The notes: generated by a model not told the origin, from the sequence alone. A DNA stretch of 64,000 bases from Adineta vaga (GCA_021613535.1 CP075494.1:1-64000); one strand, 5' to 3'; counted from the first letter of the stretch, positions 12,939 to 61,352 are shown. Numbers and translations: made by a program.

Positions 12939-13967
12939 TCAGCTATAAACGATAGTGTGAAGAATTGTGTCGTTTATTCTTAATATTTCCGTCACTGATC
13001 CATTATGAACTTCGCGTTGCACAAACGGATAAATATCAGCGAGATCAATACATTTTTGTGTTGTTACATCGGCAAATGTTTCATTTCGATGATCCCAATA
13101 GTTACTTACACAGTTTATTTCTATATCAAATGGTAAAAGATATAGCGGTTGATTCGGTGCTGGTAACCATAATTGACCAAATGGTCGCATAATCAATGGA
13201 AATATATATTGAAGTTCAACTAGTAATTGGTCTGGTCTATCATATAACCATATATGACTTCTGTTTGTTGCATAAAAAAAGATGTCAACAAACGGAAATG
13301 CCCAAGGAAATTTACTAACAGATGAGTTGTGTTTAAAATAAACTCTACAAAACTCACTTATTGGTTTTTTACTGTATACATAATAATGATAAGCAACAGA
13401 CGTATTATTCAAAGCATTGAGACCATCAAGTAAACGTAATCGATCTGTAATTAATATCATTATATCAGCATCATCATCCCATGGAATTAAATCATGATGA
13501 CGCCAAGAGCCTAACAATGTTCCACTATGCATCATATATGTTAAATTATATAGTCGACACATTCGATCAATAACTGTTAGAAGACGTATAATTTGTAAAT
13601 GTTGGCATGGAGTTATTTGTCGACGAAGAAGAACCGATGATCTCCATCGAGAATAATGATATGGTATGGAATGAGATTCATTTGAGTTTATTAATGGAGC
13701 GAAAAATTTTGGCTTCCTAAATATATTATGCTTATCATCAAGATGAAATGTTGATTCAATACATTCTATAGAGATATCATCGATTTTAATGGGTTTTCTC
13801 CTATTATGTGGCGACGTGTTGTCTAGTAGTGTATTTGTCAACGAGAATGACGAGTCCTCACACGAGAAACAAGAAATATGTTGTCCAAATCTCATTATGA
13901 TGAAAAATAAAGCAAATCCAATACTGAGCCATAGATATCGACTATTCTTTCCAAATAGATCACACAT
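12939..13967 (-). CDS. LicD/fukutin-family phosphoryl-transferase (type II membrane protein), single exon
   Basis: N-terminal TM segment, plus the LicD signature SGTLLGSWRHHDLIPWDDDADI, FVDIFF and IFPL..RPFG. Confidence 0.88.
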   Translation of the reverse strand: MCDLFGKNSRYLWLSIGFALFFIIMRFGQHISCFSCEDSSFSLTNTLLDNTSPHNRRKPIKIDDISIECIESTFHLDDKHNIFRKPKFFAPLINSNESHSIPYHYSRWRSSVLLRRQITPCQHLQIIRLLTVIDRMCRLYNLTYMMHSGTLLGSWRHHDLIPWDDDADIMILITDRLRLLDGLNALNNTSVAYHYYVYSKKPISEFCRVYFKHNSSVSKFPWAFPFVDIFFYATNRSHIWLYDRPDQLLVELQYIFPLIMRPFGQLWLPAPNQPLYLLPFDIEINCVSNYWDHRNETFADVTTQKCIDLADIYPFVQREVHNGSVTEILRINDTILHTIVYS

Positions 13968-30550: not shown

Positions 30551-32215
30551 TTAAAATGACTCATTTGCAGAATTGTTTTTGAAGGAAAAACCTTCATAAC
30601 CATTGCTCTTGATTTCCTCACATTTCTTCCAGTATTCAGGACAACCACCTACATAAGGCATAAAAATTCGTGGTTTTCCAATGATATTTGCCCCAGTATA
30701 CCAGGAATTGCCAGTAGGATACAGAGTTGTATTGGCAACGTCATTAACATGTTTAAACCAACTATCTTCTGCTTCGATTGTAGGCTCAATACTGCCGAAG
30801 TTATGTGTTCGCATATATTCCAGGCATTCTGTGACCCATTTAACATGCTCCTCGATCGAGGTGGCCATGTTGCTTATTTCAGAAGGACTACCAGGGCCGG
30901 TAATGATAAATAGATTAGGAAAATCAGCGACCATAATGCCAAGATAAGTGCGCGGTTCATTCGCCCATTTTTCTCGAAGTGTCTTGCTTTCAGAACCACG
31001 AATATCAATATTAAGCAATGCTCCAGTAATTGCATCAAATCCAATAGCAAGAATGATATCATCTACTTCATAAGTTTTATCTTTAGTTTTAATTCCTAGA
31101 GGTATTATTTCATCAATAGGACCGTTGTAAATATCAACAAGTGTAACATTTTCGCGATTATACGTCTCATAATACGTAGTGTCACAACAAACACGTTTGG
31201 TACCTAAAAAATAATTTTGTGGCAGCAAAGTCTTAGCAACGGTAGGATCTTTGACAATTTCACGAATCTTGGCACAGACAAATTCTGAAGCTGTCTTGTT
31301 TGCTTCCTTACTTTTAAGCAAATCATTAAAATGAAAAAGAAATACAATTCCTCCTTGTTGCCATGCTATCTCATATTTCTGTTGCAACTCTTCTGATGGT
31401 AGACTTAGCGCAGAATATGCTTTAATATCGTTCCAAACGCCACAGCGCATCTGTCGCATTTCACGTCGACGTTGAGCATAATTAGTTTTCCATTCTTTTT
31501 CGTATTCCTTTGTCATAGGTTCATTATTTAGTGGTATACTAAAATTTGCCGTTCGTTGAAATACATAAAGATGAGCAGCCTCTTCAGCGACGACCGGAAT
31601 GCATTGTATAGCTGATGACCCCGTGCCAATGACGGCCACACGATGACCAGAGAAGTTAATATTCTCATGTGGCCATTGACTGACACTATAACACTTGCCC
31701 TTGAAACGGTCCAACCCTTTGATATCAGGAGTTTTTGGAATCGAGAGACAGCCTGTTGCCATAACGCAGAATTTAGCTGAAATTTGATCACCACGGTTCG
31801 TTCGAACTGTCCATTTTGTGGAAGATTCATCAAAGATTGCGCTCATTACACGAGTGTCTAACTGAATGTCTTTCCACAGATCCAATTTATCAGTTACGTA
31901 ATTGAGATAACGCAAGATTTCTGATTGAGATGCATAACGTTCTGACCATTGCCATTCCTGTTGTAGCTCTTCATTGAATGAATACGAATATTGCATACTC
32001 TCAACATCAGATCGTGCTCCGGGATAACGGTTCCAGTACCATGTCCCACCGACTCCACCACCGACCTCAAATACCTTCGCCGAATATCCTCGCTCTCGTA
32101 CTTGATGCAACATGTATAAACCAGCGAATCCAGCTCCAACAATAACAACATCGACTGTACTAATAATATTTCCGTTAGCATCATCTGTGTTCTGTGAATC
32201 TATCTTGGTAGTCAT
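30551..32215 (-). CDS. Type I Baeyer-Villiger monooxygenase (cyclohexanone/phenylacetone monooxygenase-like), intronless
   Basis: 554-aa ORF with Rossmann motifs GAGFAG and GTGSSA, GGTWYWNRYPGARSD, ATGCLS, GTKR, and a variant fingerprint FKGKCYSVSQWP. Confidence 0.93.
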   Translation of the reverse strand: MTTKIDSQNTDDANGNIISTVDVVIVGAGFAGLYMLHQVRERGYSAKVFEVGGGVGGTWYWNRYPGARSDVESMQYSYSFNEELQQEWQWSERYASQSEILRYLNYVTDKLDLWKDIQLDTRVMSAIFDESSTKWTVRTNRGDQISAKFCVMATGCLSIPKTPDIKGLDRFKGKCYSVSQWPHENINFSGHRVAVIGTGSSAIQCIPVVAEEAAHLYVFQRTANFSIPLNNEPMTKEYEKEWKTNYAQRRREMRQMRCGVWNDIKAYSALSLPSEELQQKYEIAWQQGGIVFLFHFNDLLKSKEANKTASEFVCAKIREIVKDPTVAKTLLPQNYFLGTKRVCCDTTYYETYNRENVTLVDIYNGPIDEIIPLGIKTKDKTYEVDDIILAIGFDAITGALLNIDIRGSESKTLREKWANEPRTYLGIMVADFPNLFIITGPGSPSEISNMATSIEEHVKWVTECLEYMRTHNFGSIEPTIEAEDSWFKHVNDVANTTLYPTGNSWYTGANIIGKPRIFMPYVGGCPEYWKKCEEIKSNGYEGFSFKNNSANESF

Positions 32216-34183: not shown

Positions 34184-34824
34184 TCATTTACTATAAATCT
34201 TCGGATTCAGCGCATTAAACTGCGTTGAATCATCTAAAAAAAAGTTTGCTCGAATTTTGCGTTGCGTATACCTTATGATCATTGATGGGCATATTCGATG
34301 ACGATTAAGAAAAGCCTACACTAAAACGTCGCTTATCGAAAAAATATAGGAGATACAGATAGGAATATGCGTAAAATATTTGCGCCTGTACTCCCTATAT
34401 GCCTTGCCGCGCACATCAAAGATTGACAATTTCGTCTATACCCTTCTCCAAACAGGATCTACAGAATTTATTCCTCTCGCACTTATTTCTGCTGTAGGAT
34501 TTGTTCTCAGAGCCACGCTCTAATCCTCATCAATACCCTGAAGATGGATTTGCCATTTTTGTTGAGATTTTTTGTATAGGACGATACGTATGTTTGATGG
34601 TTCCAGTAAGTTTGCAAAATATTAGCCTCTAATCGAAATGAGTTCCTTACCAGTGCAGCAAAAAAGTCAAGTCAAAAGTTTTCTCATTTATCTATTTTCT
34701 AGATCTTTCTGCGTTTATATTGTTCACATTAATTTGTTTCTAATAAATTTAAAGTTTTCATTAGTTACTATTTAAAAATCATTTCATCGCCCATCTTCAA
34801 AATGATAATTGTAGTTTATGTAAG

Positions 34825-37800
34825 ATGGAAGAAGCGAAGTCATTAACATTCTTGGAACCTCCTCTTGTCATGACCAATGAGCAATTGCATGACTCTCCAT
34901 CGTTTGATCAACAACGAACTTGGTTCAATGAACAAGATTATCTGGATTGTTGGCTATCAACAACTCATTGCAATATGATATTACCTTTAATAATCAAACA
35001 TCGCACAATGTCTATCGGGCGCATTCATTCATCCTTTAAAACTATTATCAGACAACATAATATTTTTCGAGGAACTATTCAATTCAATGAAGATAAAAGT
35101 CAGCTTGAACAAATAGTTCAGCCTATTACAGATGAAAGCAAATATTTATTTGAAGTGACATCCATTAATAAGTCTCAAAAGGATATCGATACTCTGCTTA
35201 AAGCTGAATTAACCATAAAATTTTCAGAGATTGATAACAGTTTGGTAGTTCGATGTCATCTCATCACAATGCATTTAGATGATACGGAATATTTACAACC
35301 AGGTGATCTGATCATCTTTACCTTTCATCGAATAGTATTTCATTACATGTCTTTTGATCCTTTTCTGAATTCATTCTTGCAGGCCTATAGTGATGAAGAA
35401 TCTTGTGAAACAACAAAGCGTTCTTTTGATTACGTTTTGCAAGAACATGAGCAGATAGACAATTCAAATTCAAAAATAAATCACACAGAACGCTTTTGGT
35501 CAACATTGCTAGAAAGTTATAATTGGAATCAAGCTTGTTTAGATTCCAGTCGTTTTTCAATATTGACAAAGGCATACTCGATCCACAGCAATTCGATTGC
35601 TTTTATTTTGGAAACGAGTATACTTAATGCAATGATACAATTTGCTTCGTTCTACAAGATTTCCATGTTTGAACTGTGTTTAGCATGCTATTTTACTTTC
35701 CTGCATAAACTTACCAATCAACAAAACGATAATTTGATTGTAATCAGTCCAGTAGATAATCAATCTTTCCACAATAGAAAATCAACGATTGACACATTCA
35801 TCAATCTCACACCGTATCAAATCAAAATTGAATCGGAAAATAATTTTGTTCATTTGATGCAGCAAATTCATACTTTAAATATCGATGTATATCAACAGAC
35901 TCAGTTGTCATATAACGACATTGTCAAGAATGGCTCGTCGATTTCGAAAATTCCTTTTTATTTTCAATATAAAACAAACACATCATCGCTTAAACATGAG
36001 TTTATTATTAAAAGAAATACAAAACAAACACTACTGGCTTACTATGTTTATCCAAATTATTCCCACACAAACGATGTGACCCAGAGCGATCTTTCGTTAA
36101 TCATGACTCCTGATTATCAACAACAAACAATAAACTGTATATTAACATGTTCATCCGCTTTGTATGATGAGAAGAAACTGTTTATGATGGTTCACAATTT
36201 TCAACATCTTTTGAAAGAACTATTTTATTCTCACCAAGAAGCCAATAAGTTTAGTCAAGGCTTTCAACCAATTCGAAAGCTAACGTTATTCTCTGACAAT
36301 CAAATTAATGGAATACAAGACACAACTTTCCATCGCCTACCGGAGATCATCGATCAAGGTATGTCCTTAAATGATTATGACGCCAATTACTTTTGTCATT
36401 TTAAAAATACACATGGTCAAAATCATGCGCTAGCGATATGACATTAAACACTTTGAATAAGTGTGTCTTCGTAAAACAAATTCATCTGGAGTTGAGTTGT
36501 TCTATATAACTTGCAAAATCGATACTAGAAAAACTGGCGTTTGCGACGTAACTCAAAAGAAGATATCGCTGCGGTAAAATTCTGTGAAATTGCACAGAAT
36601 ATACCTTAGTTGTTTAGTAGGTTTTCTGATTACGGCCGTTTTCTCAATATATCATACTTATCTCGGGTGAGCGACGTGACAGTATACGAATAAAAGGCAT
36701 TATCCGTGTGAAACTGCTAATTTACTATAGTCTTAGTCTTCTAATTATCAAACAAATATTCGTTCAAAATTGATATAAGAAAAATCTTGAATTTTATTAT
36801 TGAGATTTTAGTACAGGTTCAATGTTGTGTAAACTTAATAAAAAATATTGTTTCAGCAGAAACACAATATATTCTGAATGTTACCGAAAAGAAAACAGCG
36901 AATTAAGTCACATTCTGTTGTTCAGCAATACGCCGTTGCACTTTAGTATTATGTTCATATTAGATCCTATATAACAATGCCATGTATCTTACAAATTGAA
37001 GATGTTGGAGAAGCTTACGAAAATACGAGAGTTGCTAAGTTACTGTCAGATCAAATAGTTGAGAAAAAATCTGTCATCAAATTTTACGAGAATCCACATC
37101 GTGATAAGACTATGAACTAAAAGATACACAAACTTATTCAATATTAACCACTCATCCACACTTCTTTTGAAAAATATGAGGTATACAATATACTTCCCCT
37201 AAACGTTATATCTTTCCGCGTCACTTCAAATATTGTTATTTTTTGTAGCACCCGTTTCCTATGCTCAATCTCGCATTTGGCAAGATGAACAAGTGCGATT
37301 TATGCGAACAAAAGAAGTAGTAGCCATTCACAATATGCCCTTTCTATATTCTATACCATCGGATAACACCATTTCAATCACAAAACTTCGGAAAGCTTTA
37401 GAGCATGTAGTGATGAAACACCCGTCACTTCGGACATCAATCATCTTCGACATCGAGAAAAATGAATTAATACAAAAAATTATGACGCCAAACGGTAAAG
37501 AAAATTTGTTCATATTTGTTGAAAGTAACTTCAAAACAGAAAAAGAACTTAGTACTATTATCAATGATGAGTACAAAAATCCTAATCATTTCAATCTCGC
37601 TAGTGGTTGTGTATTTCGATGTCACATTGCTCGTCAGCATCCGATCTTTTCAGATGACCTACTTTCCAAAGATGATATAGTAATTTTTAATTTTCATCAT
37701 GCCATCTTCGATTTTTATTCCATGGATATATTCAATTTTGATCTAAATCTTGCTATCTATGGTAATCTAACGACATACGATGAACATACAAACCTGCGTT

Positions 37801-40800
37801 ATTTTGACTGTAAGTTTGATATTCTATTCTTTTCTTATCTGGACATCGAATATATTTTTTTCTAGATGCTGTCATTCAGCGGCAAGTGGATATGTCTAAC
37901 GCTAGTTCATTTTGGTTTGACGCGCTTCGTGATTATAAATTTGACCAGTTATTGACATTGCCATTTGACCAGTATCGAGTTACCGATGAATCCCGTTCAT
38001 GTCGTGGAACATCAGTTTCTTTTGATTTTGGTGAAAAAATATCTCAACGTATTACTACCTATGCATCAACTAATAATACGAAAGTGGAATATATTGCACT
38101 TGCTATCTATTATGTCTTGTTATTCAAAATAACAGATAGTCAACAAGATTTGTGTGTGAGTGCAAATGCACATGGTCGCTACAGAGCCGAACTTATGTCT
38201 CTAATTGGAGTGTTTATCAACGTGATTCCTTTGCGATGCCAGATGGATCCCAATAGATCTTTCAATGAACTTGTCGACCATGTGCATAGAACAGGAAGTC
38301 GATACTCAGAACATTCTTATTTTCCTCTTCAACGTATTCTTGAACTACATGTCGCTGCCAATCAATCCGCATTTCTTGACATTTATTTTGGATTCGAATC
38401 TATAGCATTCCCAAATACTTCTGACCATATCAGATTAGGTAATATTTCTATTCAGTCCGCGACTGTTCAATATAATACTGGTACGACTGATATTGTTACT
38501 AAGTTCGATCTTTCAATCAATGTTCAACATGATTTGACAAACAATCAGTTATCATGTGTAATTAATGGATCCTCTGATTTGTTTAGCAAACAAACAGTAT
38601 ACAAGATAGGACAACGATTTATACTAATCATGGAACAATTATTTGAAGATACCTTTAGCCAAACTAAGAAATCAATATACGAGTTATCGTCACTAATGCC
38701 CGATGAAGCAATATTCATTCGATCTATTAAAAACACAGACATTGTCCTTCCTACTTTCAACTGTCTTCAGCATGAGTTTGTATATCAAGCGAAACATCAT
38801 AATCAAAAATTAGCTATTGAACTTGATGAACAATCTCTCACTTACACTGAACTTCTTTATTATGTACAAAAATTAGCTCTTCATCTTATCATCAATCATC
38901 ATCTCACAACTAATGATATTGTTTGTCAATGTATTGAAAGAAGTCTCTCAATGGTAACACTATAATAATAAGAAATAAATTAATAAATAGTTTTTCTGAT
39001 TCTCTAGGTCATTGGAATTCTCTCGATTGAAATAGCTGGTAGTGCTTATTGTCCCTTATCAGCTCGAGATCCTGAACAACGATTAAATATTCTCATTCAT
39101 CAAACTCAAAGTCCTCTTGTTCTTATTCATCATCTAACCCAATATAAATTTAATAATAATAACATTAATACATTAGATATTGATACAATAATTAACAATA
39201 ATCAAATAATCAATGAAGAAGATCTTTATCATCTATCAAATATTATCATTACACCAGAAAGCATTGCTTATGTCATATTTACTAGTGGCTCGACAGGCAT
39301 ACCAAAAGCTGTTAGTTCTAACTTTGATGTTTGTTTTCTTCTATTGTATTCTGTTTATAGGTTCAAGTACGTCATCAGAATTTTATTGAATGTATTCATT
39401 CTCTTGTTCATATTAATACATTTACTGAGATGGATACAATCATACAAATGGCACGTTGTTCATTTGATATTCATATGCAAGATATTGTCGGAACATTAGT
39501 CGTTGGTGGTACATTAGTAATGCTTCATCCAAAAGGAAATATGGATTTTGAATATTTGACTGAAGTACTTAAAACTAAACAAATCACTTTTATACATGCT
39601 GTGCCAACATTAATCTATAGTCTTTTTCAATATATCAAGGAAACCAAAGATTTGCTTGTCATCGAATCATTACGTACACTTTGTGCTAGCGGTAAGTACT
39701 ACCTATACTATGTCTAGAATAGTCATGTAATGTTCTTCGTTTTTCTTAGGTGAAGCTGTATCTACTAAAATGATTAATTTTTTAGCGACTTTTCTGGCGC
39801 GAACGGTTCAAATATGGGATTTGTATGGTCCGGCTGAGACTACACTCATCTCTACCTATCATCTAATAGATCCAACTATTGATAAAACAAGTATTCCAAT
39901 TGGTCGACCTCTTCCTAACTATACATGTTTTGTTCATGATGAATTTTCACAACCAATTTCTATACATCAAGTAGGTGAATTGATTATAGGTGGTGTAGGT
40001 GTATTTGCTGGTTATCTTGGTCGAGATGATTTGACAGCAAATGCATTAGTAAATATTGATGGAGAAATATGCTATAAAACAGGTGATCTTGTTCGATTAA
40101 ATGAAAATGGTTTACTTGATTATCTTGGTCGAAAAGATAATCAAGTAAAGTTGCGTGGACAACGGATTGAACTTAATGAAATTGAACAATGTTTGCTTGA
40201 AACATCGATTACAGCATGTGTTGTTATAAAATGGAAGGATGATTATTTAGTTGCATATGTGCAAAATATTAACACTGATGTAAAATTATTGCGTGAACAT
40301 TGTCTTTGTCGTTTGCCATCGTTTATGGTTCCATCGATGTTCATTGTGCTCGAAGAATTTCCATTAAATGCAAATGGAAAAATAGATCGGAAGCGTCTTC
40401 CTACACCTGACTTTTCATCAGTGTCAAACATTGAAGAAGATCTTGAACATATCGAACCAAAAACTAAGCTTGAAAGACGTGTTCATTCATTATGGTGCAA
40501 GATTCTCGGTTACACTCAAATATCTACGAATACAAGTATCTCCAGCATTGGTGGTCATTCGCTTTTATTGACACAACTTTACCATAGTTATAGAACAAGT
40601 TTTAACATTGGTAGTCAGTTTGCCGGTATTATGGAATTTTTTGAGCATCCTACAATTGCTGATCATGCTCGTCTGATTGAAGAGTCGATAACCAGTCAGG
40701 AGTGTGATATTATATCTGCTCACTTATTGTCAGAAATAGAGACGTTGGAAACGGATTCAAACTTGATCACTGAAAACCAGAAATGCTCGAGATATGAAAA

Positions 40801-43800
40801 CTTTCCTACCACAGAAATCCAACAAGCTTATCTATTTGGACGAAACGAATACGTGGAGCTTGGTCACGTTTCCTGTTTCTCATACGAAGAATATGATTAT
40901 TCATCAAACTTTAATATATTACAGTTCGAACAAGCATTTAACTGTTTAATTGGTCGTCATGAAACACTACGTATCATTTTTCCATGTGCAACCGAACAAA
41001 AAATTCTCAAGGATGTTCCTTATTATAGAATCGTTGTACTCGATTTAAGCAATAATTCATCAATAGATGAGCAACTTCTGAAACGTCGAATACAATTGTC
41101 ACATCAAGTGCGTCCTGTTGATCAATGGCCACTTTTTGATATTCAATTGACTCGATTCATGATTGATGAAGAACACCAGCTTCGTTTACACATCGGCTTT
41201 GATCTCCTTATTCTGGATCTTTGGAGTTTAAAATTGATTTTATCTGAATTAAATGAACTCTATCTCAATATAAATAAGGTTCTAGCATCTTTAGATATCT
41301 CTTATCGGGATTATATTTTAGCCGAACTGAAAATGAAAGAAACAGTTATCTATAGGAGCAATAAAGAATATTGGATGAATCGCTTAACTTTGTTTCCATT
41401 AGGTCCTAATATGCCACTACGATGCTCGCCAACTGAACTGAAAGTACAACGTTTCTGTCGTCTAAAGAAAACGTTAGATCGATATATATGGCAACGTTTG
41501 AAACATCAAATTCACAGACTCAAGTTGTCACCAGCTGGCTTCCTAGCATCAGTCTACTCAATAGTATTATCTAAATGGAGTGAAAACAAACACTTTTCTC
41601 TAAATCTACCTATTTTTAATCGTTCATTAATACATCCGCAAGTCAACGAAATAGCTGGCGATTTCACATCAATACTTCCATTAGAAATTAATCTTGATAA
41701 GTCGGTTGCTTTTGAACAATTTGCTCGTACTGTGCAAAATCAATTGTGGAATGATCTTGAGCATATGCTGTACAATGGAGTATCGTTTATTCGTGAACTA
41801 ATGTGCTTAAATAATTCAAGACAAATTATTTTACCGATTATTTTTACATGTGGAATAGATGTTGATAAATCTAGTTATGAGACAGACTATAACAATATCC
41901 TTTTCGACAAACCACCAGTATACGGTATTACGCAAACTCCTCAAGTTTTTCTTGATAACCAAGTACATGAACATAATGGACACTTGATAATACATTGGGA
42001 TTATGTAGACGATCTGTTTCCGCCAAAAATGGTTAGTGATATGCTAGAGGCATTCATCGGTTTACTTCATAGATTTTCATTGTCTGAAGACATATGGCAC
42101 GAGCCTGTCATTCTTTCAATACCAATTGATCAACACGAAAGACGGCTAGCCTTTAATCAAACAAAGTGGACGCCAGAAGTAGAAAATAAATTACTTCATA
42201 CATTGATAAGCAAGCAAGCCGCACAGGTACTTAATGCTCCGGCTGTTTTCTCTTCCCGTGGAAATCTAACATATGAACAACTAATGAATTATACATATTC
42301 TCTTGCAAATCACTTACGCGAACATGGAGCACAAAATAATCAGTTAATCGCTATTTTTATGGAGAAAGGTTGGGAACAGATTGTTGCATGCTTAGCTGTA
42401 CTGTTCTCGGGTGCTGCATTTTTACCATTAGATATAGACTCTCCCCAAGAACGTCTTCTTACATTGGTGAAAGAAACTGATGTAAAAATTATTCTTACAC
42501 AATCTGATCAAAAATCAATCTTTTTGGATTTGATAGTCATTTCAGTTGATATATTTACATTTGATCTCAATCCAAAGCCATTTCCCATGCCACAGCAATT
42601 ACCAACTGACTTAGCCTACATTATTTTCACATCTGGTTCTACTGGAAAACCAAAAGGTGTCATGATTAGTCATCAAGCAGTCATTAATACTATTCTTGAT
42701 CTCAACGATCGGCTAGAAATTTCAGCTCAAGACAGAATATTTGCATTGTCTCACTTGAATTTTGATTTGTCGGTTTATGATATTTTTGGAACGTTAATTG
42801 CTGGTGGTGCTATTGTCATGTGCGACCAAGAAAGTTACAAAAACCCAAAGCATTGGTATGAGATGATGGTTAAATATCAAGTGACTATTTGGAATAGTGT
42901 TCCGATGTTGATGCAAATGTTAGTCGAGTTTTTAAAACATACTTCTAATGAAAATCAGTTGCGACACATTTTGTTAAGTGGCGATTGGATACCATTGTCT
43001 TTACCAAAATCAATACAAACAATATTTGGTGATCATGTAACAGTGACTAGCTTAGGTGGTGCTACTGAAGGATCAATTTGGTCTATCGCTTATTCCATTC
43101 CAAAGCTATTACCAAATGATTGGAAATCGATTCCTTATGGAATACCATTACGTAATCAAGAGTATTATGTTTACGATATACAATTAAATGATTGTCCTGA
43201 ATGGGTTACTGGTGAGCTTTATATTGGAGGATTAGGACTAGCTGATGGTTATTGGAAAGATAAAATAAAGACAGAATCAAGTTTTATCCTTCATCCACGC
43301 ACGAATCAACGTCTCTACCGAACGGGTGACTACGGTCGTTTCTTGCCAAACGGATATATTGAATTTATTGGACGCACAGATTTTCAAGTGAAATTGCATG
43401 GACATCGTATTGAACTTGGCGAAATCGAATATTGTTTACAGCAATTTTCAAATATTCGCCAGGCAATTGTAAATGTAGACGACAAATCTAAACGTTTAAT
43501 AGCCTATATTACGACAGAAAAACATCATGAAAACAACGATGATTATAACAAAGACAATATTTTTATCACTGATCCTACTCAATGTGATAGTTTTAAGTTG
43601 ATGAAACATAATATTTTACGGCAAGATCTAGTGAAAAAGAATTATTCATTGAATAAGTTAGAGCATACAGACACATTAATCGATACATATTATATTCGGA
43701 AGAGCTACCGACAATTTACTAATGAAATTATCACCGAAGATGATATTGAAAATTTATTAAGAAAATATCAATCTATCAATAACGGTAAAAAAGTCATATG

Positions 43801-46800
43801 TTTGAACTTGAATTCAAACACCCTAAGCCAATTTCTGTCGGTGCTAAGACCAATTACGATTCTTGATAAAACTTCTCCGAAATATCGTTACGCATCAGCA
43901 GGATCACTGTATCCAGTCCAGGTATACATTGAAGTTTTTACAATTATTGATGATATTTTACCGGGTTTTTATTATTATAATCCCGATAATCATAATCTTC
44001 AGTTGATCAGTACATGTACTAATAATGACAACGATCATAATAAAATTCACTTGCACTTAATTGGTAGATCAGCGGCTATCGCTCCAATCTATGGGAAAAA
44101 ACTAGGATCACAATTGTGCGTATTAGAAACTGGATATATGATGGGATTGTTAAAAAATGAAGCATTAAAAATGGGTTGGATATTTTCAAAGATAGAGTAT
44201 GTAGATGTAAATAACCAATTACATTTAAATTTAGACGAACATGATACTCATCATGCTTTTTCAATTCAATTAATTACACAAGATCATTACACTGATAATG
44301 ATGATGAACTTAGCAATTATCCCGAATGTATTGTGTATTTTAAGGCATCTGATCATCAACCAGAACGATGGTTTATTTATGATAGAGCTACTAGCAATCT
44401 CACACCTTTTTTTATAAAGTTATATGAAAAACAAGAAGAACCATTGCTCTTCTTTGAAAACAATGACGAAAATAAAGTTATCTTTAATGATTGTCGTGTT
44501 GCGATATTTTTCATTGGACACTTGGAGCAAGCCATAAGCACGGGCATGATGGCGCATGTTTTAATGGAAATTGGTGTTAAAGTCAACATTGGTATGTGTC
44601 CAGTCAGTAGTCATATCAATTTGCCATCGAAGATCACTAATACAATAAATGATTTTTTGACTCATTCTGACTCTCACAAGGAAAAAATATTATTACATAC
44701 TTTGCTTCTTGGAAAAATAAATCCAGAGCAAAAGTATGAACATAGAAGTTCGGTAATACGATCCGTACCCAATTACAGTCAGACGTTGACAAAATACTTG
44801 AGTACAAAACTTCCAAGTTATATGGTACCATCTTTATTTATTACTGTTTCAAAATTTCCATTGAATGTAAATGGAAAGATTGATCGGAAGGCTCTACAAA
44901 ATACATTTTCATTATCGTATAATAAAGAAAATTATGAACCACCGATTAGTGATTTAGAAAGAACCATTGTTGGTATTTGGCAGAAAGTGCTAAACTATAA
45001 ACAAACTAATCCTATCTCGATTACTGCAGGTTTCTTTAGTCTTGGCGGTTATTCTCTACTTCTCGTTGAACTTTATAATTACTATCAATCAGTATTTGAC
45101 TTTGACACTCAAACATTGACAATTAGATCATTCTTTCAACAGGATACTATAGCCGAACATGCAAAGATGTTGCAAACAACTTCTTCGACTAATATTAATT
45201 TCAACGTTTGGAAGACACTTCATATTATCGAAGGTAGTATAGATTATATAATGGGACTAACACATGAATACTTGAATTTTAGGTAGAGCATCATTTGCAC
45301 AAGAACGTATATATCTTGATGCTCAGATTAGAAATACAAACAATCTAGCGTTGTACAATGAGTTAATAGTATTTCGACTTATAAAAGGTTCATTGTCAAA
45401 AGAACGTCTTGAACGAGCTATTTGTTCGATTTTAAATAAGCATCCTGTGTTACGCACTTCCCTTTTTCTTAGTAATGATGATGGCATGTTAATGCAAAGC
45501 ATCAAGTTTAATTGCCCTGATCCATTTAAAAACGAAAAAGAGAAAACTTTTAAAAATAATGAAGAACTGGATGATATTATTCGTCAAACTACTATCGATC
45601 CTAATCTTTTTGATTTGTCAAATGCTCGAGTTTTTCATTATGAAATTGTTCGTTACGAACCAGCTAATAGTTTCAATGAGGATTATGAACTTATGACCGC
45701 ATCTGATGCACTCATCATTGCCTTTCACCATGCAGCATTTGATCTAGTGTCTAGCCGGGTCTTTCTCGAAGATTTAACTGTTGCGTACAATAGTGATAAG
45801 TTACTGTCGATTGATGAAGATTCATTTCAATATATTGACTATTCCATTCATGAACATCTGATGGATATGACGACATCTCAGATGTTCTGGCGTTCACAAC
45901 TTGAGGGATACAATTGGGAGCGTCCTTTATTATTACCAGCCAATCGATACCACAATTCTACTCATAATCGATCAAGTTTCTCTACAATGATTCATTATTA
46001 TTTCGACGACAATCTTTCCCAGTCATTTCTTGCATATGCTTCCTTGCATGGAGTTACTCCATTTCATCTAGGTATTGCGATCTTTTACGTTTTCCTATTT
46101 AAATTGAACAATGATCAAAACGATTTTTGTGTCACTTGTCTTAATGCTAATCGACATAGGACGGAATTACGAGACCTGATAGGTATGTTCGTTGCTACAC
46201 TTCCTTATCGTATTCAATTTGATCCAAGAGCATCTTTCAATCATCTCATGAAACAAGTGTTCAATCAATCTTTATCCATTTTACAACATTCGCATTATCC
46301 TCTTCAACAAATTCTCGCTAACTCATCTAAACAAGAACCGACCACTAATTTTCTCAAAATTATGTTTGATCTAATCATCTTGTCCCAAAATCTTAGCTTA
46401 TTAACTCTTGATGGAGCGCAACTTGAACAAATGCCATTTCAACAACTCGATATCATAGCTAAGTTCGACATGACATGCAGACTTATATATGATCCATCAG
46501 CTGTATATTCAATTATATCATGTTCTATAATCTGCTCCGAAGATATATATGATCAGATAACAGTGCAGATATTGATGAATCGCTATGTATCTCTTTTTCA
46601 GCAACTATTTGATCTTACATCGGTTGATATCACATCACAGCCAGTTTTTAATCTGTCCATCATCCTCCCAGACGAACTCAATATTATTAACGTATTGAAT
46701 ATCAATCATGATCTTGAAAAACGAACAGATATATTAACAATTAACGAATCTTTTTATCATCAAACTTTTAGATTTTCCCAAAAGCTCGCCATTGAACTCG

Positions 46801-49800
46801 ATGATCAGTCTCTCACTTACACTGAACTTCTTTATTATGTACAAAAATTAGCTCTTCATCTTATCAACAATCATCATCTCATAACTAATGCTATTATTTG
46901 TCAATGTATTGAAAGAAGTCTATCAATGGTAACACTAATAATAAGAAATAAATTAAATAATATTTTTTCTGATTCTCTAGGTCATTGGAATTCTTTCGAT
47001 TGAAATAGCTGGTAGTGCTTATTGTCCCTTGTCAGCTCGAGATCCTGAACAACGATTAAATGTTCTCATTGAACAAACTCAAAGTCCTCTTGTTCTTATT
47101 CATCATCTAACTCAACATAAATTTAATAATAGTCACATAATTACGTTAGATATTGATACAATAATCAATAATAATCAAATAATCAATGCAAAAGATCTTT
47201 ACCATCTATCAAATATTATGATCACATCAGAAAACATTGCTTATGTCATATTCACTAGTGGTTCGACAGGCACACCAAAAGCTGTTAGTTTAAACTTTGA
47301 TGTTTGCTTTCTTCTATTCTATTGATATTCTTCTATTTATAGGTTCAAGTACGTCATCGAAACTTTATCGAATGTATTCATTCTCTCGTTCATATTAATA
47401 CATTTACTGAGATGGACACAATTATACAAATGGCACGTTGTTCATTTGATATCCATATGCAAGATATTGTTGGAACATTGATCGTTGGTGGTACATTAGT
47501 TATGCTTCATCCAAAAGGAAATATGGATTTTGAATATTTGGCTGAAGTACTTAAAACTAAACAAATCACTTTTATGCATGCTGTGCCAACTTTAATCTAC
47601 GGTCTTTTTCAATATATCAAAGAAACCAAACAATTGTTTGTCATCGAATCACTACGTACACTTTGTAGCATTGGTTAGTGTGTACAGTCGAAATTTTTGA
47701 GTAGTGTTATATTTGTTGTTATGATTTGTAGGGGAAGCTCTGACAGTGAAACAAGTTAGTCTATTCATATCACTTATAACGAAGCATTGCCGTATTTGGA
47801 ACTTATATGGTCCTGCTGAAACTACACTAGTGTCTACGTATCATCTAATCGATCCAACTATTGATAAAATGAGTATTCCAATTGGTCGACCTCTTCCCAA
47901 CTACACATGTTTTGTTCATGATGAATTTTCACAGCCAGTTTCTGTACATCAAGTGGGCGAATTGATTATAGGTGGTGTAGGTGTGTTTGCTGGTTATCTT
48001 GGTCGAGATGATTTGACAGCAAATGCATTAGTAAATATTGATGGGAAATTTTTCTATAGAACAGGTGATCTTGTCCGATTGAATGAAAATGGTTTACTTG
48101 ATTATCTTGGTCGAAAAGATAATCAAGTAAAGTTACGTGGACAACGAATTGAACTTAATGAAATTGAACAATGTTTACTTGAAACTTCTATCACAGCATG
48201 TATTGTTATAAAATGGAAGGATGATCATTTAGTTGCATATGTGCAATGTGTTAATAGTGATGTGAAATTATTGCGTGAACATTGTCTTTCTCGTTTGCCA
48301 TCATTTATGGTTCCATCAATGTTCATTGTACTCGAAGAATTCCCATTGAATGCAAATGGAAAAATAGATCGAAAACGTCTTCAGACGCCTGACTGCTTAG
48401 ATGAGACGAATGCGGATAACAGCACTTCTTCTCCTTCAACGCCTTTAGAACATCGTTTGCAATCTATATTTACAGAGGTTCTCAATAAAAAGGTATTGGA
48501 TAAAAATGTTTCGTTGGGAGCTATGGGTGGTACATCTTTAGATGCTATGCGGGTGCTTGTAGTTATCCGGCAGCAAATCTATACAAATGTCGATGCTGCT
48601 CTTCTTTTTGCTAATCCGTCTGTTGGACAACTTGCGAGAGCTATGGAGCCGTTACTCAGTTTAAAAAAAGATCTATCACCTGAAAATGAAACAACTTCGT
48701 TCGAACAGGAGAAGCATTATCGACCAATGCCATCCTTATTTATTGAAGGATTGGGAATTATTTTACTTTTTTTTCAATGGATATATCCACTGTGGATGAT
48801 TCATAGAACTGGATACTACTTCGCCTTGCTACTATTACCCTTATTCTATCTCCTAACCTACATAGTTTGGCAACATTTGTTACTTCGTCCGAAAGGATTT
48901 TGGAAGAGTAAAGATGAACTCTATTCTTGGCGTTATTATCGTATGTGGTTTTTGAATCGTTTATGGTCAATCAATAATTCTTATTGGCTACAATGTTTAA
49001 TGGGTACTCCATTTTATAATGTTTATCTTCGAATGTGTGGCGCAAAAATTGGTTATGGTACGCATATTTATACAACATTAATTGATGCTCCATGGTTGCT
49101 TGAAGTAGGTGATTCAACATTTATCGGTGAAGAAGTGATCCTTTCGAGTCTGTCTTATCAGGATCAAACCTATAAGATTCATTCAATTCATATTGGAGCA
49201 AATTGTTCAATTGGCACTCGTTCAGTTTTATATGACGATACGGTAGTGTATGATCATGTGCATAAAGAGCCTTTATCCAGAATATCTGGACATGTGTCAT
49301 CGCCAAAGGATCACATCTCTATGCATGACAGATCTTTCACTACTGGTCAAACTATATTTCAACTTGTTTGTATTCTCTCTGTTGTGTTTATTCATGGTTT
49401 GCTACTAGTCTTTACTTCATTTGTATATTGTTATTACTTAACTTCGTTATTATTTTTACCTGCGAGTCTTGCTTTATGTTGGTTAATATGGACATCATTA
49501 AGTCTTCTTGTCCTTTTGCTATGCCTAAGATTTGTCGTAGGTGAAGTTAATCCAGGTTGTTGCTCGCTCAACTCCTATTATTACTTACGCAAAGTGTGGT
49601 TACGTCGTTTAGTTATATCATCATTTTATTATTCACTGAATCTTGTGCAATCGTATGATGAATTTGGACCAGTTATTTTACGCTGGCTAGGCGCTCACAT
49701 TGAGGATGATGTTCGACTGGCCGAATTTCAACAGATATTAAATTTTCCATCAAATCTTCTCAAAGCTAAGCGTGGAGCAACGACGTTTGCTGGAGCTACC

Positions 49801-50734
49801 CTTGCTCCATTCGAAGTTACACACGACGGTAAATGTCGTATGGAAGAAATTCATCTTGGTTCGGATGTAAATCTTGGTAATTGGTGTGTCCTGATGCCTG
49901 GAACTCAGCTAACATCGAGAACGATTGTCGGTAGTCTTACACGAGTTACAAGGGAAACAAATAATTCGGATAGTGGTACTATATTACTGGGCATTCCAGC
50001 TAGCATAATGCCATTTATGAAACTTGAACATATATCGAATGTCAGTAGTTGTCCATCGTCCCATTCGTTAATATTTATTACTTTTCTCTCTAGCGTTATT
50101 AATTTTCTCATGAGCAAGTATATATGTATCATTATATACTCAATGATGACTATTCCTATTGCAGTTCTTGTTCATACGAATCTTTTCTGTGCAGTCTATT
50201 ACTGCTCGATTTTCCGTCATAAAAAACGTACATCTTTCACTTACTCAGAAGTTGTTAATCGTACACAACAGTTTCTCCATACGTTGATGGCTGATTTTTT
50301 TACATTCCTTGGTCCATTTCTATCTGAAACACAGTTTCTTGTTTTTCTTTATCGCATTCTTGGCGCCCGAATCGGACGCGATGTCATCGTGTCTGATATC
50401 AGCTGTCTTACTGATCCTCATCTAGTGACTATTGGTGATCATGTTCGACTAAACCGAAGAGCTTACATTCAGGTAATAGACAAATCTTTTCTAATTCCAT
50501 TTATGTTATCTTTACGCTTTTTTTCTTAAGTGTCACACATTTGAACAGCGTCTATTCAAATTAGCACCTGTTACTGTGGGTTCTTCGAGTGTACTTATGA
50601 GTAATACTTTGGTATTATCTGGCGCAAGACTCTTAGGAAGAAACCGTATTTCAGCGTGCACACTTGTTATGAAAGACGATCAATTGCTAGATGACACAAC
50701 TTGGTCTGGTGTACCAGCACAACTTGTAATATAA
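34825..50734 (+). CDS. Trimodular NRPS, ~4,841 aa: C*-C-A-T-Cy-A(Ox)-T-C-A-T-Pls-like terminal membrane domain
   Basis: Exons: 34825-36358, 37249-37809, 37866-38953, 39008-39310, 39361-39691, 39750-45233, 45283-46928, 46981-47283, 47343-47673, 47732-50472, 50531-50734. All introns are GT-AG and the exons total 14,526 nt in one frame. Motifs: three A domains (FTSGSTG.PK, TGD, NGKIDR), three T domains (GGHS, GGYS, GGTS), and C cores HHAIFD and HHAAFD. Confidence 0.9.
40800..45180 (+). other. Cy-A(Cys)-Ox-T thiazole-forming module within NRPS exon 6
   Basis: Cy motifs FPTTEIQQAY, DLLILD and TPQVFLDNQV. A-domain code read manually as DLYNLSLIWK. Oxidase insert RKSYRQF...YASAGSLYPVQVY at ~43560-44750. 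Confidence 0.88.
48720..50734 (+). other. Epsilon-poly-L-lysine synthetase (Pls/PosA)-like terminal domain
   Basis: Three TM-plus-hexapeptide-repeat units (GAKIGYGTHI, GAHIEDDVRL, GARIGRDVIV) and the C-terminal QCHTFEQRLFK...WSGVPA motif. No thioesterase or reductase domain follows. Confidence 0.82.
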
Positions 50735-55071: not shown

Positions 55072-56898
55072 TTATTGTGTATAAAGGAAACAACAATAGT
55101 ATCTAAGAGAAGCTAGTTTTTGAGTAAGCATAGACACCATCATAATTAAAATAATAATTAATATTACAGTTATATTTTTGGAACGATAATTACAAATAAA
55201 AACGGGAATCATATGCGGACATATTGTAGTATTAGATGACATGATGTGGGGAGCGTAGCGAGTGCGATTACGAGGTATGGGTATATCGAAATATTTCCTA
55301 AGCGCTAATTCTGCATCAATATGACTCGTGTCTTGACCAACACGAGCTAAAAGAAATTTTCTCCATACTAAAGTACGTCGATCATTATCACAGTGATTTA
55401 TGAGTACATTCCTCAAAAGATCCGTGTGTGAACAATACTTGATACCATTCATATTTGCACGTTTAATACCAATGTTTTCAGCAACAATAGCCGTCACAAA
55501 AAGATCATCCAAAAATATGATAGGTACGTTTAGTTCAACGATTCGAAACATTTCTGAAACCAGATTTGGAATTAAGTTTGACGGATAAAGTGCTGAAGCA
55601 CCAGTGATATACGCTGGATATGTTACATTCGGATAATCTTCGAGGCTAATTGCCCATTTACCAATTGGATGTGGTCGAACAGGTGGAATATATAGGCCAC
55701 GTATTTTATTTGCATCAACATCTTCAGTATCATAAACAATTTTAAGTAATGATTCAACATTGATGAGTACATCATCATCGACATAGTATAAATAAGGTGT
55801 AATTTTATGACACCCACGTGATAAGAACCAATGAAGTACGCCTGTTATTTTCAGTGTTATATTGTAATATGCATCTGTAAATAGAAGAAAAGAATTCTTT
55901 GAGACATCAGTATATTTTAATGCTTTTTGTGGGGAAGCAAACTTTTTAAAATCCTAATACCTCATCTCTTTTCTGCAAGTACTTAGAAGGCAAAATAGAA
56001 GAAAATGACCAATAATGAAGTGAATATAGAGAAATTACACAATCGAGAGTGAAGATGAAGATATATCGTAAGTTATGGATATTTTCTTAATTTTAATATA
56101 AAAATAATGTATAAATCGACTTTGAACAATTCCTATTTCAATCATAGGTAGTCTATTTATTAGAGATAGTAACCAAAAGTAGTTGGAATCAGTATAGATG
56201 AGGATAAAGTTTGCCAAAGTCATTTAAACTAACTTAAAATAGTCGAAAATAGCTCAGTATCATTTAAACAATGGTTAAAATATTTCCAAGTAACTCTAAT
56301 TAATACGAATTAATGCGATGTTAAATAGGCATTTCTGTCCGGTAGTATCTAATCAAGAAAAAAAGAAGAATTCTCTCTTGAATCATTCTATATATCCTCA
56401 GCAAAATTTCATTGTTTTATAAAGAAACTCACCAATAAAATTGAATTGCAATATATCACCATATGTGCGATGTTCTTCTTCTAATTCCTTTTGCATTTTT
56501 TTATCATTGGATCGTCCGATTGCGTAAATTACTGGAATATCATGTGCTCGTGCTTCTTGTGCCCAAGTTAGTCTCGTAAACATACGTCGTCGAAAGTAAT
56601 CTCCCGAAGATTGACCCACTGTTTTAACAATAATGTAAACTGGATAACCAATGTTGCTCGAATCATTTGTGCATGAAAACAACGATGTCGGTTCGAGAAT
56701 AACTTCTTTTGCTAAGAGCATTTGTGAACGCTTTAACATAGGAGCAGCACTGCGTGTCACTAGCCCAGGATGACTCTTACTCTCATTGTATAATTGAAAA
56801 ATAACTTCAAGAAATATTGTACCGACTAGAAAACTCATAAGAAGCATCAGAATTGTACACTTCGGTGAGACACAGTTCTTCTGTGTTGGAGAATGCAT
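55072..56898 (-). CDS. Beta-1,3-galactosyltransferase family (GT31)
   Basis: Exon 1 is 56898-56433 (TM, RRMFTRLTW, EEHRTYGDILQFNFI). A GT-AG intron spans 56432-55875. Exon 2 is 55874-55072 (DAYYNITLK, YVDDDVLIN, YPAYITGAS, LDDLFVT). Confidence 0.88.
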
Positions 56899-58922: not shown

Positions 58923-61352
58923 TCTCCCTTTTCGTTTGTATGATCTAGCTGAGCGTTTTTCATGACGTAGTCGATCACTATGATGAAAAGAAAAGGTGCT
59001 AAGATGTCTCCTTGTAGAACAGCAGTCGTCACATCGAATTCTTCTGAGACGTTGCTGTCTACGAGAACCATGCTTTTAGAATTATGATATATGGCTTTGA
59101 TTGCGTTTACTATTTTGATAGGTATTCCATAGTGTCTTAAGATGTTGAACATTGTTTTTCTGTTAATTGAGTCAAAAGCTTTTTTGAAGTCGACGAATGT
59201 TATGAAAATTGGAAGTTGTTTGTCAATTGCGCTTTCTAGGATCCTACGAATGACATGAATCTGGTCAATACAACTTCGTCCCCTCCTGAAACCTGCCTGA
59301 TTTATTCTAAGAATCGATTCTAGTGGTTCTCGTATTCTATTTAACAGGATTCTGTTGTAGGTCTTAGCTGCGATTCACATAAGACTAATGGCTCTGTAGT
59401 TCGTCGTAAGCGTTTTATCACCTTTTTTTGGTATTGGTATTATGATGTTGGTGTTGAATTGTCTTGGTGTCTGTTGATTTTCATAGATCTCGTTGCATAT
59501 ATTGCATAATTGATTTAGTATCCATTTGCCGCCATACTTGAGTACTTCAGGTGTTATTGCGTTGTCCAGTCCAGGTGATTTTCCATCTTTTAGTTGTTTG
59601 ACTGCTTGTTCCACTTCGTCAAGTGTGAAAGGACCTTGATTGATTAGTAGGTCTTCAAGAGCTGGTGAAATTGCTTGGCTATCTTGTGAGTTGTTTGATT
59701 CTACGTTGAGTAAGTCTTTGAAATAAGTCTTCCATTCGTTCATGAGTTCGTCTGTTGAGTTGATTTTGGTTCCATCTGCTCTTTTGATTTTTGATGCGTT
59801 GCTGTATCTGTGTTTGCCACTGATTTCGTCGACCAAGGACCATGTTGTTCTTAGTTGATTTGATGCAGCTGCTTGTTTGAGTTGTTCAAGTTTGTCTTCT
59901 AAAAAATTAATTTTGTCATTGCTATAAGATGTATCGAGCTGTTTATTGAGTGTGTGCGCCAATGATCTTTTTCTCTGCGCTTGGATTGTGTCTGAATTTG
60001 GTTTTAGCTGCATTTCGTTGTTTTAGGATGTTGAGTGTGTCAATGGTAACCCAATTTCTCCTCTTTTTCCGTGTCGATTTCCCTACCAACTTTGTTGTTG
60101 TTTCTTGTATACATTGCACAAAATTGTCGTATTTTGCTTGTATGTCGTTGTCGGGGTTGCTGTTGTCTAAAATTTCATAACGAGTTTGAACTTCTATATT
60201 GAATTGTGATTGTAGTTTGCAGCTAGTTTTGAGTTTGTTTCAGTCGTACTTGATCCTTTTGCTTTTGATATCTTTCGGTGCTCGAAGGCTGATTGATAGC
60301 TTGGCGCTAACAATACGATGTTAGGAATTGAATTCTACTGTGTTGTAAGCGCGAGCGTTTTGAATTGAATTCAACCATTTTCCATTTATGAGAATATGAT
60401 TCAGTTGAGCTTTGGATTTGCCATTTGGGTGTAACCAGGTCCATAATCTTGATTGTGGTTGTGGAAAGCGTGTCTGTGTTGAGCGCATGTTACAGGCTTC
60501 GCAGTAGTTGACAAGTCTGTTGCCGTTGTCGTCAGTTGAGTGATGATATGTGTGTTTGCCAATTGCTCGTGGATTTGTTGTGTGACTGTCGGATCCCAAT
60601 CTTGCGTTAAGATCGCCAGCAAGTATCAGGACATTGTGTAGTGGAACGTCATAAGTACATCTTTGCAGATCATCGTAGAAGGTATCTTTTTCTACATCAC
60701 TTTTGTCTTCAGTAGGTGCGTAGACGATGATGATGGTTATTGTTGGGTTGCCTTTAAAGTGTGCCACCATGATGCGATCAGATATTTTTTCTGAAGAGTC
60801 GAAGAATGCTGACATTCTAGGATTTATCAGTAGTCCGACGCCTCCATGTTCTTCTGGTGTTGCTGAGCAGTATTCGAAGCGCCATGTTTCGTCGTTCAGT
60901 GTTTGATAAGTTGTACTTGTTTGTTCTGATGTTTGCCAGCGATGTTCTTGAATTGCTACCAGATCGATGTTGTTTTGGTTGCATCCATATACAAGTTGGT
61001 GCAGTTTTTCAGTTTGCTTGAGACTGCAAACGTTGTAGGTGGATATTGTGATGGTCTTGTGAAGAATTTTTATGTTTTTTGTGTTTTTATTTTTTGAACG
61101 ACTCGCCGCTGCTGTATCAAAGGCAGGTAGCTGTCTTATCATAGGCTTGAATTCTTGCAGAATCTTTGCTTGCTGACGGCGAGACGAGAGACTGTTGCCC
61201 GGCATGGGTTCTTCAATTGTTGTTTTCGGAGTCATTGTGAAGCACGCTTCAAATGACTAGCCCTGAAGCGCTTACCAGAGCCCATCTTAGCCGCCGAGAA
61301 CGGCATCTCCATCCGACACTGCGAGGAAGTGAAGGGTTGGGTTTTGCCGGAC
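58921..61352 (-). mobile_element. Non-LTR retrotransposon (RTE-like, APE-RT), inactive and 3'-truncated
   Basis: APE motifs TYNV, IQEHRW, YAPT and GDLNARLG. RT motifs KSPGLD, IPKKGD, NYRAISL, QAGFR, DFKKAFDS and LQGDILAPFLF. In-frame stops at 60321, ~60240 and 59375. The element ends before YADD. Confidence 0.9.
61281..61352 (-). ncRNA. HDV-like self-cleaving ribozyme in the retrotransposon 5' UTR
   Basis: Minus strand parses as P1 GUCCGGC/GUCGGAU (G1-U wobble), P2 CCCUUC/GAUGGG, P3 ACU/AGU with L3 UCCUCGC, GG for P1.1, P4 GCCG-UUCU-CGGC, and J4/2 GGCUAA containing the catalytic C. Confidence 0.82.

Follow-up and report, generated by a model that had tools for sequence, protein, structure and literature searches.

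A spliced gene of Adineta vaga for a three-module non-ribosomal peptide synthetase with a predicted thiazole-forming module and a Pls-like end domain

The gene and its splice structure

The left subtelomere of chromosome 5 of the bdelloid rotifer Adineta vaga (assembly Av20, GCA_021613535.1, Chrom_5, CP075494.1), of which positions 1-64000 were analysed (64,000 nucleotides, hereafter the window), carries on its plus strand, at 34825-50734, a non-ribosomal peptide synthetase (hereafter NRPS) gene. Its eleven exons and ten GT-AG introns define a coding sequence (CDS) that is 14,526 nt long and comprises 4,841 codons and a stop, in which an arithmetic check found no internal stop codon. The encoded domains follow the order C*-C1-A1-T1-Cy-A2(Ox)-T2-C3-A3-T3-end domain, where C stands for condensation, A for adenylation, T for carrier, Cy for heterocyclisation and Ox for a flavin mononucleotide (FMN)-dependent oxidase, and C* is a degenerate condensation domain at the head of the protein. 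In our judgement it is probable that this is one intact gene for a three-module NRPS of bacterial ancestry, which has acquired introns and which unites a thiazole-forming module with an end domain for release at the membrane. The locus corresponds to cluster 5.1 of Nowell et al. 2024 (Nat Commun 15:5787, Supplementary Data 9), by which name the gene is called below.

Exon boundaries were set by direct reading of each junction, followed by the arithmetic check, and domain and homology searches were run exon by exon (Pfam, NCBIfam and motif reading). Exons 1-4 lie at 34825-36358, 37249-37809, 37866-38953 and 39008-39310, exons 5-8 at 39361-39691, 39750-45233, 45283-46928 and 46981-47283, and exons 9-11 at 47343-47673, 47732-50472 and 50531-50734, all on the plus strand. 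Reading phases agree at all ten junctions. Nine of the introns measure 49-59 nt and are AT-rich (17-31% GC, against 34% in the exons), while intron 1 measures 890 nt; the GC content of the gene as a whole, 34%, equals that of its flanks. Splicing rebuilds conserved motifs across several of the junctions (a bar or flanked residue marks the join): RYFD-Y-AVIQRQ in C1, SLSM|VIGILS and TGxPKA|VQVRH in A1 and likewise in A3, LCAS-G-EAV, and, where C3 begins, IIE-G-RASFAQERIY. The end-domain junction IQ|CHTFEQR yields the family motif QxHxFExR, as seen in an alignment of 27 relatives. A preliminary description of this DNA had proposed ten GT-AG introns joined into one frame of about 4,841 amino acids, the domain order given above and three intact carrier serines; the frame, with exactly 4,841 codons, matching phases and no stop, the exon-wise Pfam and NCBIfam searches together with the motifs, and the carrier cores GGHSL, GGYSL and GGTSL bear out all of this.

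Intron 1 (36359..37248, plus strand, phase 1, GTATGT...TTGTAG), the sole long intron, is the only junction that has no internal homology check, and whether this splice is real decides if the head domain is part of the gene. We consider a single gene that includes exon 1 to be likely, with high confidence. A strong donor, CAAG|GTATGT at 36358|36359, stands in phase 1 and agrees with the acceptor at 37248|37249, and two paralogs in this genome have an intron that agrees with it in position and phase, of 66 nt in one (L021; ...RLPNINE|G|PASFAQARIW) and of about 500 nt in the other (L022), each joining the same two domains. Two separate genes, one for a stand-alone degenerate head protein (34825-36441) and one for a downstream NRPS with the 890 nt as intergenic sequence, would be consistent with several features of the region: the exon 1 frame, if read through unspliced, runs into a stop of its own at 36439-36441, intron 1 stands out by its length, and the cluster 5.1 row of the published table gives the pieces as separate CDS (34825-36441, 37233-37865, 37892-38965, 39770-45286, 45351-47003 and 47746-50529; Nowell et al. 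2024). This arrangement is nevertheless improbable, given the donor in matching phase and the shared introns of the paralogs. Furthermore, the exon 2 frame contains no ATG between its upstream stop (37200-37202) and the C1 core motif, and no protein of 281-894 amino acids identical to exon 1 was found in a collection of 5.8 billion proteins, a negative result which is not decisive, as it fits either a long model or none. The DNA of intron 1 occurs once in the genome and is thus not a repeated element, on which ground insertion of a transposable element was rejected as the source of its length.

Domains of the assembly line

The module in the middle of the protein allows part of its chemistry to be predicted. 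The Cy domain (40787..42103, plus strand) carries the motif DLLILDLWS (DxxxxDxxS) at 41201-41227, and its best match among solved structures is the Cy domain of EpoB (5T7Z, E 3.7e-76), followed by Irp2/HMWP2 (2.9e-72) and BmdB (2e-67); ordinary C domains match it far worse, with a best E of 1.4e-9. The adjoining A2 domain (42212..44900, plus strand; A8 at 43370-43393, A9/A10 at 44870-44887) reads DLYNLSLIWK at the ten specificity positions, which were assigned by GrsA numbering. The canonical cysteine code is thereby matched at ten of ten positions, and so exact a match supports, as a control, the way in which the positions were read.

Embedded in A2 is Ox (43560..44790, plus strand), a putative FMN-dependent oxidase of the SagB/nitroreductase/BmdC type. 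An insert of about 420 amino acids separates A8 from A9 (LPSYMVP), which follows it, so that about 500 residues lie between A8 (GRTDFQVK) and A10 (NGKIDRK), compared with about 80 in A1. The insert matches the bacillamide oxidase BmdC (E 3e-9) and carries RKSYR, KYRYASAGSLYPVQ, PGFYYYNP and APIYG, which correspond to NRPS Ox motifs; the motif names are said to go back to Du et al. in 2000. A T2 carrier (44964..45169, plus strand; GGYSL, Ser codon 45053-45055) completes the module, the whole of which sits on one intron-free exon of 5.5 kb. The preliminary description had postulated a Cy plus A(Cys) plus Ox module, and this domain-based reading, as a module of the EpoB/bacillamide type, stands on the DxxxxD motif, the EpoB Cy as best match and the cysteine code. 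A cysteine-derived thiazole is the predicted part of the product chemistry.

Two ordinary modules flank it. In module 1, C1 (37249..38670, plus strand; HHAIFD at 37695-37712) is split by intron 2 (37810-37865), A1 (38790..40400, plus strand) by introns 3-5 (38954-39007, 39311-39360 and 39692-39749), and T1 (40478..40678, plus strand) has the core GGHSL with its Ser codon at 40559-40561. In module 3, C3 (45283..46630, plus strand; HHAAFD at 45726-45743) begins just after intron 6 (45234-45282), A3 (46790..48390, plus strand) is split by introns 7-9 (46929-46980, 47284-47342 and 47674-47731), and T3 (48454..48642, plus strand) has the core GGTSL with its Ser codon at 48535-48537. To our knowledge no specificity code matches those of A1 (DIQHCSLLIK) and A3 (DIQHCILLVK); the nearest known to us is the serine code, DVWHLSLIDK, on which we make no substrate call. 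The DNA of A1 and A3 (38800-40360 and 46780-48340) is about 90-96% identical (about 92% overall, one divergent patch apart), introns 3-4 and 7-8 included, which indicates that sequence was recently duplicated, or exchanged by gene conversion, between modules 1 and 3. The divergent patch at 39660-39857, about 60% identical, reaches from the last part of exon 5 through intron 5 into the beginning of exon 6 and includes pocket positions 299-331.

The head domain C* (exon 1, 34825..36358, plus strand) is recognized by Pfam Condensation over amino acids 28-468. In its active site, FHRIVFHYMS (35323-35352) replaces HHxxxDG, with loss of the catalytic second His and the Asp. The best exon 1 paralogs stand at the upstream end of other clusters; most head-domain paralogs retain HHIAFD, and a KS lies 9-11 kb upstream on the same strand in six of the nine best. 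Similarly, in the rows for clusters 5.2 and 6.x in Supplementary Data 9 of Nowell et al. 2024, KS-AT-(DH)-KR directly precedes the head C domain. The 5.1 gene has no polyketide synthase (PKS) upstream of C*, and one further paralog without PKS, at 15.96 Mb on C2, reads HQ for HH and has lost the second His too. As the paralogs that follow a PKS keep the motif, and the 5.1 gene has neither, the most likely reading of C* is that of a PKS-to-NRPS interface domain in decay, although the sample is small.

At the opposite end of the protein lies a Pls/PosA-like end domain (48694..50734, plus strand) built of three repeats, each consisting of a transmembrane hairpin and a left-handed beta-helix (LbH). 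The hairpins lie at 48727-48867, 49336-49524 and 50077-50196, and the LbH regions at about 48991-49293, 49651-50043 and 50311-50472 plus 50531-50731, the last being interrupted by intron 10 (50473-50530, plus strand); the stop codon follows at 50732-50734. The domain matches TIGR02353 over positions 78-695 of 695 (E 7e-39, 135 bits), contains Hexapep Pfam matches and, by hydropathy, has three pairs of transmembrane helices (six in all) alternating with the hexapeptide-repeat regions. An AlphaFold2 model of the exon 10 part (593 amino acids, last exon absent) shows three repeats of transmembrane hairpin, short helices and LbH, with a mean predicted local distance difference test score (pLDDT) of 87.2 and a predicted template-modelling score (pTM) of 0.88. 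The complete domain of a Rotaria magnacalcarata homolog, 48% identical, was modelled with the same fold (pLDDT 87.8), and this model resembles ESM-Atlas clusters named Pls/PosA at TM-scores of 0.85-0.88 over about 645 residues. A sequence search of the PDB found no solved structure of a Pls-type domain, the only match being QdtC (E 0.005), and a Foldseek comparison of the window's own model with the PDB returned only weak matches to LbH acetyltransferases.

In a quick maximum-likelihood tree, end domains fall into two clades, each with 100% support by the Shimodaira-Hasegawa-like approximate likelihood ratio test (SH-aLRT). One holds the canonical bacterial Pls-type proteins together with two A. 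vaga loci, L001 and L002; the other holds the end domains of multimodular rotifer proteins, among them that of 5.1, and one protein from outside the rotifers, P0056. The nearest end domain to that of 5.1 belongs to cluster 5.2 (51% identity, clade support 98%). The Pls-like membrane terminus proposed in the preliminary description therefore holds in topology, fold and motif, but the domain fails the TIGR02353 cut-off and lies outside the canonical Pls clade.

Relatives, origin and earlier accounts

Within the A. vaga genome, TIGR02353 matches occur at at least 14 loci, and seven more matches to the oxidase insert are spread over six places. One of these places, at the left end of chromosome 1 (L011/L012, C1:11565-17228, minus strand), encodes two tandem Cy-A-Ox modules in one open frame of 3,293 amino acids. 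It is Nowell's cluster 1.1, whose table row reads '3'-incomplete; Cyc_NRPS; Nitro_FMN', and it may represent a bis-thiazole line cut short where the chromosome ends. L001 (C1:11882475-11884550, plus strand) and L002 (C1:880858-882927, minus strand) match TIGR02353 over its full length in intron-free frames with 508-513 bits; being above the cut-off and in the canonical clade, they suggest that A. vaga owns 'true' Pls-type synthetases besides the multimodular family.

Beyond this species, relatives with 51-63% identity are found in Adineta steineri, A. ricciae and Rotaria species, and one Rotaria socialis protein contains a thiazole module and hexapeptide repeats together. Outside rotifers, the Cy-A-Ox-T exon has its closest relatives among bacteria (37-46% identity), namely Pyrinomonadaceae, Eubacterium, cyanobacteria and Brevibacillus. 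For the end domain, the best 150 relatives in a library of 1.8 billion proteins were considered. Among these, the bacterial-type proteins are single-module and about 1.3-1.9 thousand amino acids long, while the long ones are from rotifers, for example UJR17611.1 of A. vaga (3,646 amino acids, three A and three C domains). P0056 (L009:6001-15516, GCA_017884045.1, JABBYD010000051.1) is the only non-rotifer multimodular protein with a Pls-like end domain among the 150: an intronless 3,171-amino-acid Formyl_trans_N-A-T-C-A-T protein with that end domain, from a eukaryote assembly in which its neighbours are histone, G-protein-coupled receptor (LRR-7tm_3) and DWNN genes.

On these sequence comparisons the 5.1 gene is assigned to a bdelloid-specific family of assembly lines with common head and end domains, which includes cluster 5.2; it lies in the subtelomere of a bdelloid chromosome and shares intron positions with its paralogs. 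The preliminary description knew of no characterised enzyme with its architecture. None with a thiazole module and a Pls-like end was found in any organism searched, and to that extent the statement survives, but the gene is no one-off, since paralogs in the expanded bdelloid family have the combination in common.

That bacterial contamination or an assembly artefact underlies the locus has a practically negligible probability. The domain types are bacterial, as are the closest non-rotifer homologs (38-46% identity), but the gene contains ten spliceosomal introns, matches its flanks in GC content (34%), lies among animal-type genes within a chromosome-scale contig, is contiguous in an independent DNA data set of 2013, and has intron-sharing paralogs as well as orthologs across bdelloid genera. 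The argument from introns against contamination made in the preliminary description is thereby upheld: this is a genuine animal chromosome, with shared introns and matching GC.

The family has been described before as bacterial in origin, intron-bearing, subtelomeric and expanded (Arkhipova et al. 2013; Suring et al. 2023; Nowell et al. 2024). In A. vaga, Arkhipova et al. 2013 (Mob DNA 4:19) reported some 50 copies of an NRPS family that stems from bacteria and whose introns are conserved. The row for cluster 5.1 in Supplementary Data 9 of Nowell et al. 2024 (region5.1:21856..69474, plus strand, 'intact') gives 4811 amino acids and the additional domains 'Nitro_FMN; NRPS_term', and two Av13 gene models are mapped to it; a Cy domain is not given in that row, and among the rows covered the Cyc_NRPS mark stands at cluster 1.1 only. 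The locus was thus already tabulated. Thiazoles, hexapeptide repeats and poly-lysine synthetase receive no mention in the main text of Nowell et al. 2024, nor do Pls or heterocyclisation domains appear in Suring et al. 2023 (Genes 14:1741). A splice model, thiazole formation, the Pls-likeness of 'NRPS_term' and a degenerate head domain were likewise absent from the searched text of these papers. As locus and domain list are published, the present contribution is one of interpretation and a testable model rather than of gene discovery; what is added here is the confirmation of Cy, the dead C*, the conserved intron 1, the separate clade of end domains and the kinship to the end domain of cluster 5.2.

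Several other features of the window deserve mention. Divergent from the NRPS gene and 2.6 kb upstream of it lies an intronless flavin monooxygenase (FMO)-like gene (Pyr_redox_3/FMO-like, 30551..32215, minus strand, 554 amino acids), whose closest paralogs (61-62% identity) are in the subtelomere of chromosome 1, 26-55 kb from Ox-bearing NRPS clusters. It is possible that this neighbour is a tailoring enzyme, for which the location of its paralogs is suggestive only. A GC-rich satellite of 52 bp (19773-21758, 38 copies, 96% matches) explains the GC peak of 0.53 at 20-22 kb. Open frames on the minus strand at 681-1454, 12939-13967, 56398-56898 and 60321-61235 have matches to Glyco_transf_7N, LicD, Galactosyl_T and Exo_endo_phos, and the last of the four may be a retroelement endonuclease. 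The gene mix of the window is typical for a bdelloid subtelomere, with many foreign and mobile genes.

Proposed mechanism and comparison with known systems

In the model that we favour, A1 would load an amino acid, X1, onto T1, and Cy would join X1 to the cysteine loaded by A2 on T2 and cyclodehydrate the product to a thiazoline, which the FMN oxidase within A2 would turn into a thiazole. C3 would then append X3, activated by A3, which closely copies A1 but differs from it in two residues of the pocket (positions 301 and 331). The resulting X1-thiazole-X3 thioester on T3 would be passed to the membrane end domain, with its six transmembrane helices and three tandem LbH acyltransferase-like domains, which would set the chain free at the membrane by passing the acyl group on to a nucleophile, an amine being the likeliest. 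A membrane-bound assembly line for an X-thiazole-Y unit, as the preliminary description envisaged, is consistent with the domains present; the oligomerisation in the style of Pls that went with it is only one of several possible release chemistries, besides a single transfer or hydrolysis, given that the end domain falls below the family cut-off and in a separate clade.

Should the end domain work exactly as Pls does, it would be an iterative polymerase and would make oligomers of variable length from X1-thiazole-X3 units or from the last residue. Topology and fold are the same as in Pls/PosA end domains, the conserved QxHxFExR motif is present, and with C* inactive the chain could retain a free amine as acceptor. 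We nevertheless regard such a polymerase as unlikely: apart from the separate clade and a score well under the family cut-off, among the best 150 relatives, canonical Pls-type proteins have one module and reach at most about 1.9 thousand amino acids, the A1 and A3 pockets lack the acidic residue expected for a diamino acid, and the intact C1 ahead of A1 may cap the amine. A broader proposal, which we put forward tentatively, is that the rotifer clade of Pls-like end domains represents a distinct mode of termination for multimodular assembly lines, in which a single-chain triple-LbH acyltransferase in the membrane receives the completed peptide, here one with a thiazole, from the last carrier and couples its release to amine conjugation, oligomerisation or export as part of an inducible defence. 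The role in chemical defence is proposed on account of the nearest paralog, the pathogen-induced cluster 5.2.

The following points weigh against the gene model and mechanism favoured here. Intron 1 is some 15 times longer than the other nine introns. The profile matches of Ox and of the end domain are significant but stay under curated cut-offs: Ox reaches 46.6 bits (E 2.6e-12) with TIGR03605 (SagB-type dehydrogenase), the cut-off being 78.4, and 20.4 bits (E 6e-4) with Pfam PF00881 (nitroreductase), the cut-off being 23.5, and the 135 bits of the end domain with TIGR02353 compare with 423.1. The acceptor and chemistry suggested for the end domain are pure inference, drawn from Pls. We know of no product for any member of the bdelloid NRPS family. 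At most 1% of sampled words were found in RNA-labelled A. vaga runs, only DNA runs from one study of 2013 being matched, and no spliced contigs came from the four runs compared with the stretch, which is no evidence of silence either. Finally, Nowell et al. 2024 name just two upregulated A. vaga CDS, and both fall outside 5.1, in clusters 3.4 and 5.2.

The lack of RNA contigs and the absence of 5.1 from the pathogen-induced clusters bear on a further alternative, namely a relic, silent or in decay: a subtelomeric paralog that looks intact but is not expressed and is turning into a pseudogene. The catalytic residues of the head C domain have already been lost. In addition, a DNA contig of 2013 that probably represents the other haplotype differs from the window at 18 sites over 4.1 kb (34700-38845). 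Ten of 16 coding changes are non-synonymous, and of the 14 coding differences listed for this stretch nine are (six of these nine in exon 1), though none introduces a stop. All 4,841 codons remain open, however, and all ten splice sites, the three carrier serines, two HHxxxD motifs, DxxxxD, the A core motifs, the perfect cysteine code and QxHxFExR are intact. The cluster is curated as 'intact' in its published row, with two Av13 models mapped there (Nowell et al. 2024), and bdelloid NRPS genes are reported to be nearly silent until induced. We accordingly hold a relic to be an unlikely explanation and prefer an intact gene.

Few animals make non-ribosomal peptides, and the bdelloid rotifers stand out among them. 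At three modules and 4,841 amino acids, 5.1 is among the smallest apparently complete members of the family, and this small size, together with a predicted cysteine-derived thiazole, makes it a practical entry point to a first bdelloid NRPS product. It is also a practical system for the role of a Pls-like 'NRPS_term' after a multimodular line, of which we found no biochemical study in the literature.

Three known systems offer points of comparison. The first, cluster 5.2 (AVAG|g48151), is a PKS-NRPS hybrid induced by fungal infection (Nowell et al. 2024) and has the nearest end domain, marked 'NRPS_term' in its own row of Supplementary Data 9; its head C domain, a paralog of C*, is likewise linked to the following C domain across an intron in the corresponding place. 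According to that row it differs in having KS-AT-DH-KR before an intact head C, more modules (about 8,748 amino acids) and no Ox flag, whereas 5.1 is without PKS, has a dead head domain and possesses a thiazole module.

The second comparison is with the thiazole-forming modules of EpoB and BmdB/BmdC, with which 5.1 shares a Cy domain with DxxxxD, an A domain that is cysteine-specific by its code and a putative, BmdC-related FMN oxidase. EpoB and MtaD have their oxidase within the C-terminal portion of the A domain; the rotifer oxidase lies between A8 and A9. The EpoB module follows a PKS loading module, while the rotifer module stands between two ordinary NRPS modules in an animal gene. BmdC, in turn, is a separate protein, whereas the rotifer oxidase is encoded in cis within A2.

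The third comparison is with Pls/PosA, of which the epsilon-poly-L-lysine synthetase Pls was reportedly described by Yamanaka et al. in 2008. Enzymes of the Pls type have a single A-T in front, no C domains, and polymerise one amino acid. To that single A-T the 5.1 gene opposes three A-T pairs with C*, C1, Cy and C3, and the canonical clade excludes its end domain. In both, the end domain follows a carrier and consists of six transmembrane helices in three hairpins with three LbH, collinear with the profile of 695 positions, and the likeness in fold, measured through the 48%-identical homolog, reaches a TM-score of 0.85-0.88.

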